DNA of 64,000 nucleotides from Marsupella aquatica (GCA_973895155.1 OZ316898.1:14972330-15036329), one strand, 5' to 3'; counted from the stretch's first letter, positions 24,391 to 32,353 are shown. Made by a program: numbers and translations. The notes: a model not told the origin generated them from the letters alone.

Positions 24391-24899
24391 CTGTAAAGAA
24401 ATGGAAAATACAAGCAATTTGATGTTAAGCACTGATATATCATTGACAATATATCAAATAGGTTATCAATAGGGTGTAAAATAACAAATGACATGTGAAA
24501 CAAATGCAATGCAATGTGTGAAGATACATAGCACATTGTCAAAGGACAAAAAATGCTTAATAGAAACAAAATGCCAAAGAGAAGAGATCCAGTAAAGGGG
24601 AAAAATCAATGGAAAAACCCCGAGATGACCAAAGATAAAAACACAGGGGAGTCCCACACAATGCAAAAGAAACTATACCCCTACTCAGCGGTAAACTAAA
24701 AAGCTTTGTAAAGCTCATGAGTAAACCACATAGGAGAATCACAAAGTGGTGTTTGCTTAGAGTCCCTAAAACCAGGATCTTAGAGCCAACTTGCATATGG
24801 ACGATCCTTAGTTTTCAGGTCCTCAACTTACAGATGGCAGTAAAGTATTGATTGATTGAGAACTTTGTAGGTCTATTTGGTTGACAAGGCTTTGATTGA

Positions 24900-24979
24900 G
24901 ACCTTAAGGGCCTAAAACTTGCCCTTGAACAGGTGGAGAACCAAGGGCAAGTTTTAGGCCCTTAAGGTCCCACCTGTTC
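24900..24979. repeat. Perfect 28-bp hairpin whose loop is complementary to the 3' flank
   Basis: Arms 24900-24927 and 24942-24969 are exact reverse complements. GAACAGGTGG (24927-24936) is the reverse complement of CCACCTGTTC (24970-24979). Confidence 0.9.
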
Positions 24980-25685
24980 TTTGAAATGAGAATAAAACAA
25001 ACAAACATGATAATGCACTGTTCATACAAACAAGGGAGAAGGCTAAACAATCACACAAAGATGTTTTGCAGGGTTCACACATAGCAAGCAAGCAGGTCTA
25101 TGGAACATTGAAATCCTTTTTTTCCCAATGCTCTTAATTGGCAGCCTGTTGAATGCTTGAGCCCTTAAAAAGTATAGTAGGGCGTCTCAAATATGAGACT
25201 TTTCCCTGCGGGACGCCGCCCGGGAGCGTTCCAGGTCGGGCCATCGGTACTGACTGGTCGGGCGCCGAATGTCAGCCCCAACCAGTCACACCCGGGACTG
25301 ATGACCGATAGGGAGTGCCCGACTGCGCGTAACCCAGGTTACCCTAGGGTTTAGGATGATGGTTGGATGAGCGCAGACTACCTCACGACTACTTCACGAT
25401 TCTCTGTCGCCCCCCTCCCCGAAGGTCGAGCATCGAATTTTGAGCGCGTACTCTCCTACAAGTGTTCGATGGGAGCATTGCGAGCTAACTTTGTAACCAG
25501 GGAGTGAAGGTGGTGGAGCTTTAACGATCGGCTGTGGTTGCGTTGTGGGTTGCGCGCCTCTGTGAAACGATTTTCACACCACGCAATATCGGTAAGGGGT
25601 CTTTAGCGTCGAATTTTTGAAATAGTTGTTGTTCATGTGATGCGCAATTCGTGTTGCATCCTGAAATGCTCTATATCTTTCTGTC

Positions 25686-26345
25686 ATGGTGGCATTCCAG
25701 GCCATGGGGGACTGGACACCCCTTGCAGTTGTGGAGGATGCTAGAGTCTCTGGAAAGTGCGAGTCGTTCCCACCATCTCTAGTCTGGGCAGGGAACTATT
25801 TCGCCAGAAATCCATTTCCAAGGAAGTTTACGTATTCTGCATGTACAGAGCTGGAACGTCCAGGCATAGTTTGTAACAGGTCCCTGGAGTTTGGTCGAAA
25901 ATGTGGGCATTCTGCCCGTGGAGAGCCTAAGTATCGATTCCAACTCACTCTCTTTGATGCTGTGCACGGTGGCACACCTCCACTCAGAGCTCTAATTTGG
26001 GATCAGACAACTGTGCTCCTCAATTTACAGCCAGCAGCATTTAGCCTTTTACATGATGATGAGCAACTAGTCACGGTCCTAAAAGTAGTCCAAAAATGTC
26101 CTAAATTGCAAGTCTGGTTATCTGTGAAAAACATGGAGCTGCACATCCTACGCCTGGCATTTGTGCATGAAGGGTGTACAAGTAGTCCTGGGATTCATTT
26201 AGGTAACAGCATAGGAAATTCCCCTAGCCAGGGTACACCCAAACAGGCTGTACAGTTTGAATGCACTCCCACAAAGCCAAAGAGTGCCAAAAAATTGTTG
26301 GCTGATTTGATAGAAGCTCTGAAGGACACTGACCTAATAGATTAG
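25686..26345 (+). CDS. Transposon-borne RPA70 C-terminal-like OB-fold/zinc-ribbon protein (probable start Met at 25704)
   Basis: FTYSACTE...VCNRSL...KCGH...EPKYRFQLTLFD...LRALIWD...LLNLQPAAF matches the Rep_fac-A_C pattern YxAC..CNKK...C..C...RY.L.L.D.T....F...LLG..A. The ORF is intact. Confidence 0.6.
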   Translation: MVAFQAMGDWTPLAVVEDARVSGKCESFPPSLVWAGNYFARNPFPRKFTYSACTELERPGIVCNRSLEFGRKCGHSARGEPKYRFQLTLFDAVHGGTPPLRALIWDQTTVLLNLQPAAFSLLHDDEQLVTVLKVVQKCPKLQVWLSVKNMELHILRLAFVHEGCTSSPGIHLGNSIGNSPSQGTPKQAVQFECTPTKPKSAKKLLADLIEALKDTDLID

Positions 26346-26577
26346 ATTTTGAGTCACTCTATAATGTTTTCAACTATTTTGTACTCGACTAATGCATACC
26401 TCTGCCATGATATTTGTATACTACCTTGGCAAGTGGCTGTTTTTTTTTTGCATACAAATGTTCCATTGCTGAATCCTTGGTCTAAGTATGTGATTGAATT
26501 CATGGGAATTGTGCAAATGCCTCTGAACATTTATCTTCTTGCCTTGTACATTTTTCCAGAACCATACATTGCTCATT

Positions 26578-28097
26578 ATGCCTCGTGTTTTACAACGCCA
26601 GGAACAATTGAGGGCTCTCAGGCATGAACTACAGCTAAACATTGCATTAATGAGCTCCTCAAACTCTTCATCTGATGTAGATTCACTGAACGCCCCATCG
26701 GGCTACTTGGAGGCAGAGGATCTGGCCAATACTTCCATTTTATCACAGTCAGACAACGACTGTGACATGGACAGTACTACTTCGGACTCAGAGTGCTCAG
26801 ACGGTCCACTTGAGTATGAAGTTCTTACTTCAATGTTTGAATTGTACTTTGTGCTGTACTACACCAGGTTCTTTGTCCCCAGACATGTGACCAGTAAGTC
26901 TGGGGAATTTGTCGCCCAATATTTCCACAATTTGCCCAATCCATTGTTCAGGCAGCTGACGAGGATGGACAAGAGCACCTTCTTTGGCCTGGTTGATAAA
27001 GTTGAATCTCATCCCATATTTGAGAACCATTCTCACTATGGACAGGCCCCCATCATTACCCAGTTAGCAGTATGTCTTGACAGGCTAGGCCATGATGGTA
27101 ATGGGGCGTGTTTAAATCATTTGATCCCAACTTGGGGAGTTAGTTGTGGCACTCTAGTAAATTTTAGCAAGCGGTGCTTTGTGGCTTTAGAGGCAGTGCT
27201 TTTTGACCAAATTGCTTGGCCAAACATCACTGAGAGGCTTCAGATTTCAGAAGCGTTTTCAGCTCATGGCTTCCCAGGATGTGTAGGGCTCATTGATGGG
27301 TCCCTGATGCCATTGACACAACGGCCTAAAGCACATGGAGAATGTTACTATGACAGATAGAGTCGTTATTCAATTAACAGTCAAGTAGTGTGTGACCACA
27401 GGCGAAAAATCATCTTCATGTTCATAGGTAATTATATTTCCATTTGCATTTTCAATTGAAATTGTAAGTTGTATTGAGCAGTTTTAAATTGCAGGACTAA
27501 CTGAACATTATGTGTGTACAAATTTCAGGAATACCAGGATCATGTGGTGACCTCACAAGCATCAGGAGGTCTCCATTGTGGGAATATTGTAACCAGGTAG
27601 GGGCAAATGTAGTGTTCCAAGAAGGGCAGTACTTATTGGGTGACTCTGGCTATCATGTCTGTCCCCATTTAGTATGTTCCTTTAAACGAGTGGACACTTC
27701 AGACAACAAAGAGGACTTTAACACATGTGTGGCTAAGTGTCGAGTCACTAATGAACATTGTATTGGAGTTCTGAAATCCCGTTGGCATTCACTGAAAGAG
27801 GTGAGGGTGCAGCTCAATCAAAAAAAGGATTCAGTTTGGATGGTTAGATGGATAAACATTTGCTGTAAGTTGCACAATTATGTTATCAATGAGAACGATG
27901 AGTGGACTGAAGACGACCAAATGGAGAACCAGGACTCAGTGGATGCCTCTGAGCCGAATGAGACTGAAGGACATTTCAGGGCTTCAAGGCAAGTAACTTC
28001 ACAGGCCGGAAATGCCCTGCTACTTCGGGTAATGGATTACACCCAGGTTCAGTTTAATAGGGCCCCAGGAAGATTTTTATGGAGCGCCCCTCAATGA
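26578..28097 (+). pseudogene. Harbinger/PIF DDE transposase (DDE_Tnp_4), two exons, one nonsense codon
   Basis: Reads FRQLTRMDKSTF...QLAVCLDRLGHDGNG...GFPGCVGLIDGS...YYDR*SRYSINSQVVCD; intron 27428-27528; then GIPGSCGD...YLLGDSGY...RVTNEHCIGVLKSRW...CCKLHN. The TAG at 27358-27360 sits where a Lys is usual. Confidence 0.92.
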
Positions 28098-28112
28098 CCA
28101 GGACTCAATTAA

Positions 28113-28849
28113 ATGGCCACTTTGCAGGTATAGTCCTGTTCCCCTTGTGTGGCACACAGTTCTACATACTTCACGTGGGTACTTTCTTTGTGGAGTTAAT
28201 ATGGAGTAACTTCGTAAGGCAGCCACTTTGCCTTGCATATTTCTTTTCCATGTGACGCTCCATGCCTATTCTCACGTTGGCCTTTTATGAGTACTTCAGG
28301 GAGGACCTACTCGCCTCGAGCTTCACAGAAGGCCACTCGAATGTGACAAGGGCCTGAAGTCTATTGTTGTTTCAAAGTCCGCAAGTCAGCGTAAGAGTTT
28401 TGAGGTGACATCGCTCAACGATGCAGAATACACGGCTTTGGCTTGTGGGGAAGGGGATTACCAATTCCACCATATGGATTGCAATTCCGGGTTTTCCACA
28501 GTGGCCAAAGGAACCTCGTATTTCCTTTCAGAGAGTCCACGGTTTTGTGGAGAATTTTGACCCTAATTTTGAAGGTGTGCAAGTCCTTGAGGTTAACGTG
28601 AGGGCAGCCCTAGTGTACTCCAAAGCAGTACTTTTTGGCAGGCAAGAAATGGTGCCTTTTGGGGAGATCCCTATGCCTGATCTCCCGGTAATCCACTTGG
28701 AAGATTTTGATACGGAAGGAGAGAGCGTAGTGACAACAGCGGATGCTGGATGCGGGGAGTTGGAATCGGGAGAGGTGTCCTCTGTTTCATGTGGAGAGGA
28801 CCTCGGATGTGCTAAACCGACTCCTCATACAGGAGCACCAATAGAGTGA
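28113..28849 (+). pseudogene. Third transposon-borne gene, unknown product (possible OB-fold), probably frameshifted
   Basis: MATLQ (28113-28127), then a GT-AG intron (28128-28299), then GGPTRLELHRRPLECDKGLKSIVV...EYTALACGEGDYQ. It continues in another frame as IWIAIPG...FQRVHGFVENFDPNFEGVQVLEVNV with an acidic tail to the stop at 28849. Confidence 0.4.
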
Positions 28850-29031
28850 TAGAGGATAGAGCAAAATTTCATACTAGGGTTTACGTATTGTTGTAGTTCA
28901 ACTTTGGTGGAGCTTTTTGAACGGATGTACTTTGTACACAAGCTAGGCATTTTATGTGAACTACTCTAAAATGTAACCTTGGGCAATTTTGTCTCGAAAA
29001 GCGGCTAAGTGTGCCCTTTTTGGATGAATGA

Positions 29032-29777
29032 ATGATTCGGCTATGGATGCCAAAGTATGCAGCTGTTGTGGAGTGTCAATTTGGCTTCTGTTGGCTTCTA
29101 TTGCAAATGCATTCCGAGTTTGCTCCCCGGTTTGCTCTGAGTGTGGAGGTCCATCCCAAAAATGATCACAAATGGTCCCGATGTAACATTGGAAAAGAAT
29201 GCCTATGTCCCATTTATCTTAGACACATTAATTTGAAGTACACGTAGAGTTTCAAAAAGTAATGCTCCATCAAACCCCCGATCAAACCGATGGAGCTGGA
29301 GTGGGAGGAGGAGGACGTGTATCTGTGTGTCCACTCCAAGTTCAGATTTGATAAAAATCAATAGGGCACTTTATTCTCTTAGGGTTCATTCACTGGTTCC
29401 ACGCCCAGATGTTGTGTGTTTTCTAATGCCGATCTTCTTTTTAATGAACTTGCTGCGGAGTGCTGATGTTATGCTGTGAACTATTAGTCTAGAAGAAGTT
29501 ATCCTAACGTTGGAAAGGTTAAATCATGCGACTCAGAAACTTTAACTCATCCCGCATTTTCAAGTAATTTCTGCCCCCAATCCAGATGCTTTAGATCCCT
29601 ATCTTCTGATACATACTGAGAAGACTAGACACGGTGAGCTTTCATGATATGCGACGTTCATGCTTGGGTGGATATCAACACACAAAGTGAGCTATTGATC
29701 CTGCCTTCTGAAGCGAATTCAGAAGGTTTGCATTCATGGTTAGATCTAGATATCGGTACTTACTCGCAGGATTGAAG
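29032..29777 (+). pseudogene. Possible fourth degenerate gene in the transposon (Cys-rich N-terminus)
   Basis: Fragmented frames read MDAKVCSCCG...FYCKC...VCSECGG, then later MELEWEEEDVYLCVH and FMICDVHAWVDINTQSELLILP...LHSWLDLDIGTYSQD*. Many stops; reconstruction uncertain. Confidence 0.25.
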
Positions 29778-29890
29778 GGTATCGACTGAGCATTTTAATT
29801 GTGGAAAATGTGTGTGACCACACAACAATCAGTACATGGAAAAATTGGCATTTAACCTACTTCACAGAAGCCAACCTAAAGTCTACTGAG

Positions 29891-31388
29891 CTACGGGCTA
29901 ACTGAATCTGGGACACTCGAACTTGCTGCGTCTATAATGGCCATCATTACCTTAAAGTGTTCAGGCGAAGGATTCTAATGAATAAGTTGCGTGAGCAAGA
30001 CTGTGGATTGCTGAGCTTTTATAATAGCCAGCTGATGTTTGAGATCTATTCTTGCTCGCTTCTCATCGTGTCTTCGTTGAATTCGTTCTCTTCTATTCAC
30101 TTTTGCTGATTGAGCAACTCGCATGACGCTCTCTCAGAATGCATCTGCTTCTCTGGCCTCTTTCCTGTCTACAAGTTCTTGTTGCCTCCATCTGTCCTTG
30201 GCCTCGATCATCTGAATTCTGTATGCATTTTTCTCTTGTAATCTTTCGGCATATATACACCTCGGCCAGGTTGGGCTTAGATGTGGATTGCGTTTGTGAT
30301 GGCCTCTTCCCCTGTCGGGCCCGCTGACTACCTCGTTCCTGTGTGACTGCTGGATGAGTAGACGCTGTGCCTCTGCTTTGACCTTGTGACCGTGGAGCTG
30401 CCAATGCTGGGATGAATGTTGGAGTTGACATCGGCTCTTCAACAGTTGGCAGGTTTGATCCAGGCTGGGATTCAGGCTGAGTTGTTGTTTGAGGTAGCGA
30501 CTCATTCACAGAGCTATTGGCGGTACCAGGAGGCCGAGTTGCATCAATGTCATCGTCGGTAAGGGAATGAGCAAATTGAATTTCGGGGTCAGTTGCGGCA
30601 AAAATAGCAGAGTGAGTACCAAATGAATTGTCAATGGTGCAATGGACTACATTTAGAGGCCTACATGCAAGTCATTTGCGCTACCAAATGGGAATGGGGG
30701 GAGTAGCTACGCTCTTACCTGCTTCGTGGTAGTTGGAGTTGTCTGGGTTTGGAAACTCAGATTCATGCAGCTCTTCATCGTCGGATCCAACATCAACATA
30801 TAATTCTCGATGGCCCGGTAAGCCAGCAGCGATTGTGCTTGGAGGAGAAACGTTAGATCTCTCCCCATAAATTGCGTGCATGCGCTCAAACAATGGGCAA
30901 ATTTTCTCATACTTATCACCCAGTGTAAGTCCCTGTCTCAACTCAGCTTCTGTGAGTCCAGCACCAGAGTCTCGCTTCATAGCCAGGGCCTCCTTATATT
31001 TCTTTAAGAAACGCTGAAATCGCTTCCCAAGGTTATCGCCTGTTGCCACAAACTTTGGAAATCCATTGTCGTGCAAGTCGATGAGCATCTTTTTGAAAAC
31101 AGTCTTCTTCGGAGGATGTTTACCTGTGATGGATGGACGACTACTGGTGCCATTGAGCATAGCAAAGTTCTCAGGTACTTCCAACCAATCAACGATCATT
31201 GCAAGGTGATGTGGCAAAAGCTTACGATTATCTCCTCCTGGACCCATTGCTTCAGCTTGCGTGACCATATCGATGTCGGATTCAGGAGGTTGGGAGTCGT
31301 GGATGACCACTTCAGCAGGGGAATACCTCGGCCGATTTGGATAGTGAACCTGATGGTTCACATATGATTCCTCGGCTGACAAGTCCAT
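29891..31388 (-). pseudogene. Harbinger accessory ORF2 (Myb/SANT-like DNA-binding domain + coiled-coil tail), convergent to the transposase
   Basis: Exon 1 (31388-30719) reads MIVDWLEVPENF...KKTVFKKM...LGKRFQRFLKKYKEA...GAGL...KICPLFERMHAIYGER. After a short intron come a low-complexity linker and a charged helical tail (YAERLQEKNAYRIQMIEAKDRWRQQE...), with a frameshift at ~30255 and internal stops. Confidence 0.75.
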
Positions 31389-32353
31389 GTTTAGTATTGC
31401 TGATTTCGCCTCAGAAATTTGGAGAGGAGCTCCTAGATCGAGCGAGGGAATTGCTATTTCAAATCTTCAAGGAATTGAGCAAAGCATTCATGTCGCGACC
31501 AACACATTACGGCGCGTTCAAAATAAAAGTGGGAATCGATAGAAAGCTAGTGTGTAGTGTGTAGTTTTGCACTAGTCGTCCACCTCAGGTTAACCTCAGG
31601 TTTAGCAGGAAATGGCCCGACACTCAGTGCCGCGACCCCACTCAATATTGAGTGCCCTAAAATAAAACGGCTCGGGTGTATCCACTTGCGGGACGCCCGA
31701 CACCTTCACGGGCCGCCCGTGAGGTCAGATATATTCCCATATTTGAGACGCCCTAGTAGATCCCTGCTGTCTAAAGAAGGGAGGCCACGGCTTGGACAAA
31801 AGATCTCACATGATCGTGAGTGGTACAGCTCAGGAGTAAACACATAGAAGAGTTCAGAGTGGAATTTGCCTAGAGACCCTCAACCCTAGCATAATAATGA
31901 AAGCGAATCACTCGATAGTGCAACAAACACCATGTCTAGACAATTGAGTGAAGTTTCACTTTACACGAAAGGGCGACACGTGATCCCAATAAACCGTGAG
32001 CCAACACAAATGACCCTAAACTTCTTGCAGTCCGAAAGCTTATAATTGCAAAATGACCCTCACTTTTGCTCCCAGTCACGGAAAACCCCCATTAGCAAAC
32101 TGACCCAGATAAAAGATGAAATTGGCCACCTCTAAGGTCTAGCATATAGCCACATGGCACATTTCCTGAGAAAGTGGGATTTGGAAGGAGGAGGAGCGAT
32201 ATTCGACAGAGGGGCAAGCGCATATCTACTGTAGCAACTCTATGAGTCGCAAGGATGTCTTTTCTCAAATCCAAAGCACAGCCCTTAGCTCCTACAACGT
32301 ACTGCGGTTCACGCTTTTAGCAAGGTAGAGAATTTGTGTGCAGCAGAGTATCA

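Follow-up and report, generated by a model that had tools for sequence, protein, structure and literature searches.

To move by cut and paste, Harbinger-type transposons are generally held to require just a transposase and a DNA-binding partner, and Harbinger elements are functional in heterologous transposition assays. Accessory genes resembling replication protein A (RPA) are tied to Helitrons, whose rolling-circle mechanism yields single-stranded DNA. Here we describe a DNA transposon copy at positions 25179-31754 of a 64,000-nucleotide stretch from the liverwort Marsupella aquatica (GCA_973895155.1 OZ316898.1:14972330-15036329), hereafter the window, in which positions are counted from the first letter. 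Upstream of its transposase the copy carries an intact open reading frame (ORF1) whose product resembles domain C of RPA70, the large RPA subunit. According to our analysis, it is likely, and we say so with good confidence, that this is a three-gene element of the Pangu group (Harbinger2 of Repbase) in the PIF/Harbinger-ISL2EU-Spy (PHIS) superfamily, with the RPA70C-like ORF1 as the third gene.

Pangu was described as a group of PHIS with ANT target-site duplications, ends that start with AG or GG, a single-domain transposase and a second ORF without a motif (Han et al., 2015; PMC4482050). The described elements have two ORFs and a mean length of about 3.5 kb, and the listed hosts comprise two algae and no land plants (PMC4482050). 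The group is the same as Harbinger2 of Repbase (Kojima, 2025; PMC12730594). Third genes have been reported elsewhere in the Harbinger superfamily, namely a SET methyltransferase in HarbingerS and a TET/JBP dioxygenase in PHISTA (PMC12730594). The RPA-like genes of Helitrons (plant PHRPA) were reported from monocots and dicots only (Roffler et al., 2015; PMC4683698). No paper tying an RPA-like gene to a Harbinger-type or other cut-and-paste element was found in the literature covered, most subscription journals and Repbase Reports lying outside that coverage.

The copy is a single unit of 6,576 bp and is bounded, as the earlier note had described it from the sequence, by perfect 17-bp terminal inverted repeats and a 3-bp target duplication. 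The left repeat, AGGGCGTCTCAAATATG, lies at 25179-25195 on the + strand and pairs without mismatch with its exact reverse complement at 31738-31754 on the - strand, while the identical trinucleotide AGT occupies 25176-25178 and 31755-31757. The left junction thus reads AGT followed by AGGGCGTCTCAAATATG, and the right junction reads CATATTTGAGACGCCCT followed by AGT. With up to three mismatches allowed, the 16-nt core of the inverted repeat has just two matches in the 64-kb window, both of them element ends, and no part of the element has a second copy there; the element in its source genome is read from this one copy. Related elements show the same design. The first 13 nt of the end (AGGGCGTCTCAAA) are identical at both ends of the Calypogeia fissa element L002, whose ends are both intact and which is flanked by ATT on each side, and at the left end of L007, an element on a Logan contig with AGT as its left flank. 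In L012, the right end reads GAGACGCCCT followed by ATT. All flanks seen in these four elements fit 5'-ANT-3', and the window end begins with AGGGCGTCTC, in agreement with the AG or GG start of Pangu ends (PMC4482050). The perfect 17-bp repeats, the 3-bp AGT duplication (class range 0-3 bp) and a DDE_Tnp_4/IS5-like transposase are features of PHIS, and a transposase without an extra domain next to a second ORF without a known motif is the gene content of Pangu, the third gene being present besides.

The ends also bear on whether this is a canonical PIF/Harbinger element with a TA/TWA-type target and GGGCG ends, in which the ANT duplication would be a by-product of a TA target. TA does abut GGGCG on each side in the two complete elements, the window copy and L002, and Plant_tran and DDE_Tnp_4, both matched by the transposase, are the customary Pfam models of PIF/Harbinger. 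However, GGGCG ends combined with a 3-bp duplication leave the flanks unequal (GTA versus TAG in the window, TTA versus TAT in L002), and no reading of the ends of these two elements gives equal flanks of the TWA type (TAA/TTA) that canonical PIF/Harbinger elements duplicate. If the duplication were a bare TA, the extra matching bases that make up A-G-T in the window and A-T-T in L002 would have to be coincidental, at about 0.02 per element. The second gene, in addition, is without a Myb/SANT match, as reported for Pangu. We consider a canonical element improbable. The Harbinger assignment made in the earlier note is thus upheld at the level of the superfamily, while its canonical PIF/Harbinger frame gives way to Pangu, which the ANT duplications and AG-starting ends fit.

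ORF1 (25686-26345, + strand) is intact, spans 219 codons and is predicted to consist of an RPA70 domain-C-like oligonucleotide/oligosaccharide-binding (OB) fold with a Cys-Cys-Cys-His (CCCH) zinc ribbon, a disordered linker and a C-terminal helix. A word-based search found two relatives of it and a full profile search 112 relative clusters, 17 of them with expect values (E) below 1e-30. The few annotations of these relatives that were examined read 'hypothetical', 'unnamed' or none. In an alignment of 50 sequences with 22-53% identity, C53 is invariant, and at least 90% of the sequences retain C63, C73 and H75. These residues form the zinc-ligand pattern C-x9-C-x9-C-x-H, of which C53 and C73 align with zinc-ribbon cysteines of yeast Rfa1. 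The AlphaFold2 model built with this alignment reached a predicted local distance difference test (pLDDT) score of 86, with residues 10-160 above 95; the OB fold is followed by a linker of roughly residues 160-200, poorly conserved and modelled with low confidence, and then by a conserved helix at 201-214.

The structural matches of this model are specific. Its best Foldseek hits are domain C of human RPA70 (1l1o_F), Ustilago RPA70 (4gop_C) and OB-C of Teb1 (3u50), with an E of 1e-4 and a probability of 1.00 against RPA70C. VIA-align gave Z-scores of 13.7, 13.4 and 13.0 against RPA70C and Teb1 OB-C over about 140 residues, the first for residues 451-616 of 4gop_C and the last for residues 439-601 of 1l1o_C, and its first 11 rows are all domain C, from eukaryotic RPA70, the archaeal counterpart or Teb1. 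Sequence comparison points the same way at greater distance. The ORF1-family profile matches domain C of yeast Rfa1 (E 0.004) at the Y-x-x-C and YR-x-x-L-x-D motifs of the zinc ribbon, PF08646 (Rep_fac-A_C) is matched by two of the 50 relatives (best E 8e-4), and a language-model search of ORF1 leads to Rep_fac-A_C clusters at 0.91. Judged from its modelled fold, ORF1 is a distant standalone protein of the RPA70 domain-C type and not a Pfam-defined member, which bears out the RPA70-C-like ORF that had been proposed upstream of the transposase. Because its identity to RPA70 structures is 12-18% and no full-length RPA70 occurs among the 112 clusters, ORF1 did not arise by recent copying of a host gene.

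In the PDB profile searches, three ORF1 sequences returned noise and the 50-sequence alignment succeeded. The top PDB sequence match of the 50-sequence profile, C18orf21 (E 0.0012), lies mostly in a low-complexity tail and was rejected as a homologue of ORF1.

These results speak to the possibility that the element is an ordinary Harbinger with two genes, in which ORF1 and the other extra frames arose by chance or are remnants of decayed sequence. Such a view could draw on the lack of a Pfam match for the window ORF1, on a pLDDT of 36 for an AlphaFold2 model built from three sequences, and on the frame at 28421-28849, which resembles a chance frame. It is opposed by the 112 clusters with their conserved cysteines and histidine, by the confident model with its specific match to RPA70C, and by the position of ORF1 beside the transposase, which is kept in three other elements. 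Family, fold and position refute it for ORF1; it holds for 28421-28849 alone, and as an account of the extra frames at large it is extremely improbable.

The conserved position of ORF1 indicates that it belongs to the element. Three further contigs from two sequencing samples, L006, L007 and L008, each have an ORF1 relative immediately 5' of a Pangu-type transposase and in the same orientation. Identity to the window ORF1 is 50% in L006, 36% in L007 and 47% in L008, with transposases at about 50%. L007 has the complete layout, consisting of ORF1, transposase and convergent second gene together with the same 13-nt end. In three diverged elements, the gap that separates the stop codon of ORF1 and the start codon of the transposase measures about 200-230 nt (window 26346-26577, L007:1305-1502, L006:1563-1788). 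A tree with 50 members of the family unites all four transposon-linked ORF1s in one 16-row clade with a Shimodaira-Hasegawa approximate likelihood ratio test (SH-aLRT) support of 96, in which the window and L006 are sisters (95). In the transposase tree (19 rows, exon columns concatenated after profile alignment), ORF1-bearing elements occur in both subgroups, the window and L006 together and L007 in the other, so that the two trees agree on the split of window and L006 versus L007. Seven ORF1 copies are furthermore without an internal stop despite saturated synonymous sites, with nonsynonymous divergence (dN) at 0.45-0.81. L004 and L005 represent the same DNA from separate samples, as do L009 and L010, and these pairs are uninformative on selection. 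The short and similar spacer between ORF1 and the transposase also raises the possibility of one common transcript.

Several observations weigh against ORF1 as a native third gene of a Pangu element. The Pangu placement rests on target duplication, ends and gene content, the element having been set against Pangu by its published description. The window ORF1 does not match Pfam and stays below the gathering score of PF08646. The ratio of nonsynonymous to synonymous divergence (dN/dS, NG86) is 0.15-0.42 where computable, which about half of the pairs are not, and is unreliable at this divergence. Searched with the family profile, ORF1 is absent from L002, L012 and L013 of C. fissa and from L014 of Riccia, and its absence from related elements, including the intact-ended L002, means that it is dispensable in cis. 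On the transposase tree, two gains and two losses of ORF1 are equally parsimonious. Relatives of ORF1 also occur in L003, L004, L009/L010 and L011 without a nearby Pangu transposase. In L002, a tandem array of an 81-bp unit repeated 4.9 times (L002:13841-14233) fills the gap between end and transposase in place of ORF1.

Much of this would be expected if ORF1 were passenger cargo, taken up by one or more Pangu lineages from a family associated with transposable elements or from a host family, and retained for some time as harmless, or as helpful to host or element outside the chemistry of transposition, for example by blunting RPA-dependent silencing or checkpoint signalling. The four elements without ORF1 have closely related transposases and ends all the same, and the family appears in other neighbourhoods, in L009/L010 with genes for RING and coiled-coil proteins, in L003 with a PHD ORF and in L011 with a weak match to a Mutator-like element (MULE). 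Accessory-gene exchange in the Harbinger superfamily is, moreover, exemplified by fungal TET/JBP and oomycete SET genes (PMC12730594). Passenger cargo does not, however, lead one to expect that slot, strand and the spacing of about 200-230 nt would be constant in three elements at about 50% transposase identity, that ORF1 and transposase trees would concur on window and L006 versus L007, or that the ORFs would be intact at saturated synonymous divergence, and the 12-18% identity to RPA70 structures is not host-gene-like. We regard passenger cargo as unlikely, if less so than the two alternatives discussed above.

Since slot, strand and spacing are identical and both trees agree, we prefer loss over gain, and we posit that the ancestor shared by both transposase subgroups already had ORF1 and that some elements, L002 among them, lost it afterwards. 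The evidence supports ORF1 as an element-native accessory gene that varies between lineages. The earlier note had suggested such a native gene in place of a simple Pack-type capture, and the retention of ORF1 in L006, L007 and L008 together with its low identity to RPA70 agrees with this; its absence from the C. fissa relatives is the sole point in favour of capture.

The ORF1 relatives outside Pangu elements were inspected in their genomic context. Searches by tblastn and with profiles found neither a Pangu transposase nor a second gene near those in L003, L004, L009/L010 and L011, and ORF1 is the only gene that these loci have in common. On the Logan contigs L009 (1-6400) and L010 (1-5526), which contain no transposase, a run of same-strand genes ends with a more distant member of the ORF1 family, P0123 (210 aa). 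Also in the run are genes for a coiled-coil protein of 382 aa and a RING-finger protein of 215 aa (zf-RING_2, E 2e-5), together with smaller ORFs of 59, 175 and 88 aa. In Riccia sorocarpa (L011:10001-16545, CM100796.1), an ORF1-like domain forms the N-terminal part of a 359-aa protein beside a 422-aa gene. A convergent 549-aa gene at this locus has a weak precomputed MULE match, while Pfam searches with the ORF pieces gave nothing, and we take the tie to a Mutator-like element as a lead. In C. fissa (L003:9944-11477, CBCUJL010000001.1), the relative P0018 and the L007 ORF1 belong to a supported three-way clade. It is followed by a PHD-finger ORF and has no Pangu transposase within 10 kb, and it may represent a stranded or domesticated copy of ORF1.

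The transposase gene lies on the + strand downstream of ORF1. Like the second gene, it was searched exon by exon. Exon 1 (26578-27427) starts with the ATG at 26578, includes the first catalytic D (GLIDGS) and shows full-length homology to the transposases of L002, L007 and L012. It is followed by a 101-nt phase 1 intron with GT..AG boundaries (27428-27528), recognised by the change of frame and coinciding in position with an exon boundary of the C. fissa gene. Exon 2 (27529-28097) contains the second D (PGSCGD) and the E (TNEHCIG) and matches DDE_Tnp_4 (PF13359, E 5.4e-16) and Plant_tran (E 9e-4), in line with the database relatives of the transposase, which bear PF13359 and PF04827. Identity between the window and L002 transposases is 54%. 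The DDE transposase proposed in the earlier note is accordingly present on the + strand, but the gene is not intact: an in-frame nonsense codon, TAG at 27358-27360 (codon 261), interrupts exon 1 where relatives encode Lys, the C. fissa relative reading '...WTRKSPYSINVQ'. In Riccia sorocarpa, the transposase (L014:7758-8999) is one uninterrupted ORF and lacks the intron common to the window and L002.

The second gene is located on the - strand and is convergent with the transposase in the window, L002, L007 and L012. Its exon 1 (30719-31388, ATG at 31388, donor GT at 30718-30717) encodes a conserved domain, putatively of the DNA-binding-partner type of this transposon group, without a recognised motif, and has five homologues with E of 4e-60 to 1e-25 (P0003-P0007), C. 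fissa being the source of one. The C-terminal part (29975-30646, stop at 29977-29975), traced by tblastn, consists of a low-complexity linker and a conserved coiled-coil tail, the coiled-coil segment lying at 30256-29978; the splice model that starts this exon at 30646 is tentative. A convergent - strand gene had been proposed as Myb/SANT-like. Gene and orientation stand, whereas the Myb/SANT label found no support from Pfam (no match at E of 5 or below among seven homologues) or from a PDB profile search (no match), and a language-model search leads to Myb_DNA-bind_4/MADF at just 0.78. That the second ORF of Pangu has no known motif (PMC4482050) explains why the label could not be confirmed here.

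Two lesions damage the second gene, an in-frame TGA (30131-30133) and a frameshift close to 30257. The frameshift is placed there because the linker just upstream sits in a different frame from the C-terminal segment. Across the TGA, residues 296-387 of the C. fissa protein P0006 and the C-terminal ORFs of L007 and L002 align with the window in tblastn. By this alignment, the ORF at 30093-30509 is the C-terminal tail of the second gene and not an extra gene.

Between the convergent genes lies a spacer (28098-29974) that is about 1 kb longer than in L002 and L007 and holds the 142-codon ORF at 28421-28849. This ORF has no Pfam match and, in translated comparison, no counterpart in L002, L006, L007 or L008; the sole similarity of the spacer to these elements is a 23-codon match at 29240-29308 with a borderline E of 8e-5. 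Three coding regions are conserved across the four elements, namely ORF1, the transposase and the second gene. The count of four to five genes, which had included two more degenerate ORFs between the core genes, is thus to be reduced to three, as one of these frames belongs to the second gene and the other is not conserved. Among all ORFs listed in the earlier note, the transposase gave the single Pfam match. Of the extra ORFs that were to be traced in divergent relatives, ORF1 recurs at the same position and in the same orientation in L006-L008, and 28421-28849 does not recur.

Read from its sequence, the window copy would be immobile by itself and would need proteins supplied by other copies, since the transposase is disabled by a nonsense codon and the second gene by a frameshift and a nonsense codon. 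That ORF1 is the sole intact gene is not significant, because with three lesions in about 2.7 kb an ORF of 660 nt escapes around half of the time.

A motif scan of the element ends identified GTCGGGC motifs on both sides, on the left at 25235+, 25257+ and 25317- (25235-25323) and on the right at 31615- and 31695- (31615-31701). The window contains 11 matches of this motif versus 2.4 expected, of which the five just listed mirror each other in orientation and are no more than about 150 bp away from an element end. We posit that they are candidate protein-binding sites, possibly for the second protein. About 200 bp upstream of the element, a hairpin occupies 24897-24972, its 31-nt arms pairing at 97% complementarity around a loop of 14 nt.

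ORF1 may have a role in transposition or repair. Its product would putatively bind single-stranded DNA at excision and insertion breaks and at the 3-nt gaps, or its C-terminal helix might dock onto host RPA32/RPA14 at these same sites. The cut-and-paste reaction could thereby be coupled to host gap repair or replication, comparable to what has been proposed for the RPA-like genes of Helitrons. Alternatively, ORF1 might interfere with RPA-dependent host control.

On a broader scale, RPA70-domain-C-like zinc OB proteins could represent a recurrent, undescribed accessory class of liverwort DNA transposons that is ancestral to the Pangu/Harbinger2 lineage and was recruited by other superfamilies. 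We put this forward tentatively and hold it to be less probable than its converse; the leads to recruitment are the RING and coiled-coil linkage in L009/L010 and the possible MULE neighbour in Riccia. If true, cut-and-paste elements would, like Helitrons, gain from a single-stranded-DNA-binding or RPA-docking factor of their own, and transposition might be coupled to host replication or gap repair, or RPA-dependent silencing be blunted. A conserved standalone gene of the RPA70C type suggests that, for cut-and-paste transposition too, it may be important how single-stranded DNA is handled or whether host RPA is contacted, or, in an alternative meaning, that transposons may deploy RPA mimics against host control. 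The Pangu placement would, in addition, extend the range of this little-studied group to land plants (liverworts), and annotators would be able to name a family that comprises over 100 protein clusters.

Compared with known systems, the element is closest to Pangu, with which it shares the 3-bp ANT duplication, the AG-starting ends, the transposase without another domain and the motif-less second ORF. It differs in size, the lineage described here measuring 5.1-6.6 kb, and in the third, RPA70C-like gene. With canonical PIF/Harbinger elements (PIF, Pong, Harbinger3_DR) it has in common the DDE_Tnp_4/Plant_tran transposase, short ends, a 3-bp duplication and a second gene that is needed in trans and often convergent. 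There the duplication is TWA and the partner a Myb/SANT or MADF protein, whereas in the present element ANT is duplicated and neither domain was detected in the second gene. In relation to RPA70 domain C and Teb1 OB-C (1l1o, 4gop, 3u50), ORF1 retains the OB barrel into which a zinc ribbon and a helical element are inserted. Its zinc ligands are CCCH and differently spaced, in contrast to the four-cysteine pattern in the aligned yeast Rfa1, and it is a standalone domain that lacks F, A and B, with a long disordered linker preceding its last helix.

Like PHRPA of Helitrons, ORF1 is a transposon-borne, fast-evolving and distant homologue of the large RPA subunit that is accessory and missing from some derivatives (PMC4683698). 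Helitrons, however, move by a rolling-circle mechanism with an obligatory single-stranded intermediate, and their proteins have several OB folds in about 470 aa (PMC4683698), whereas the window element is a cut-and-paste DDE carrier whose protein of about 220 aa has one OB fold of the domain-C type. HarbingerS and PHISTA, finally, are likewise lineages that stably bear a third gene beside transposase and partner. Their third genes encode chromatin- or DNA-modifying enzymes in oomycetes and rust fungi, while the one described here encodes a putative DNA-binding OB-fold protein in liverworts.

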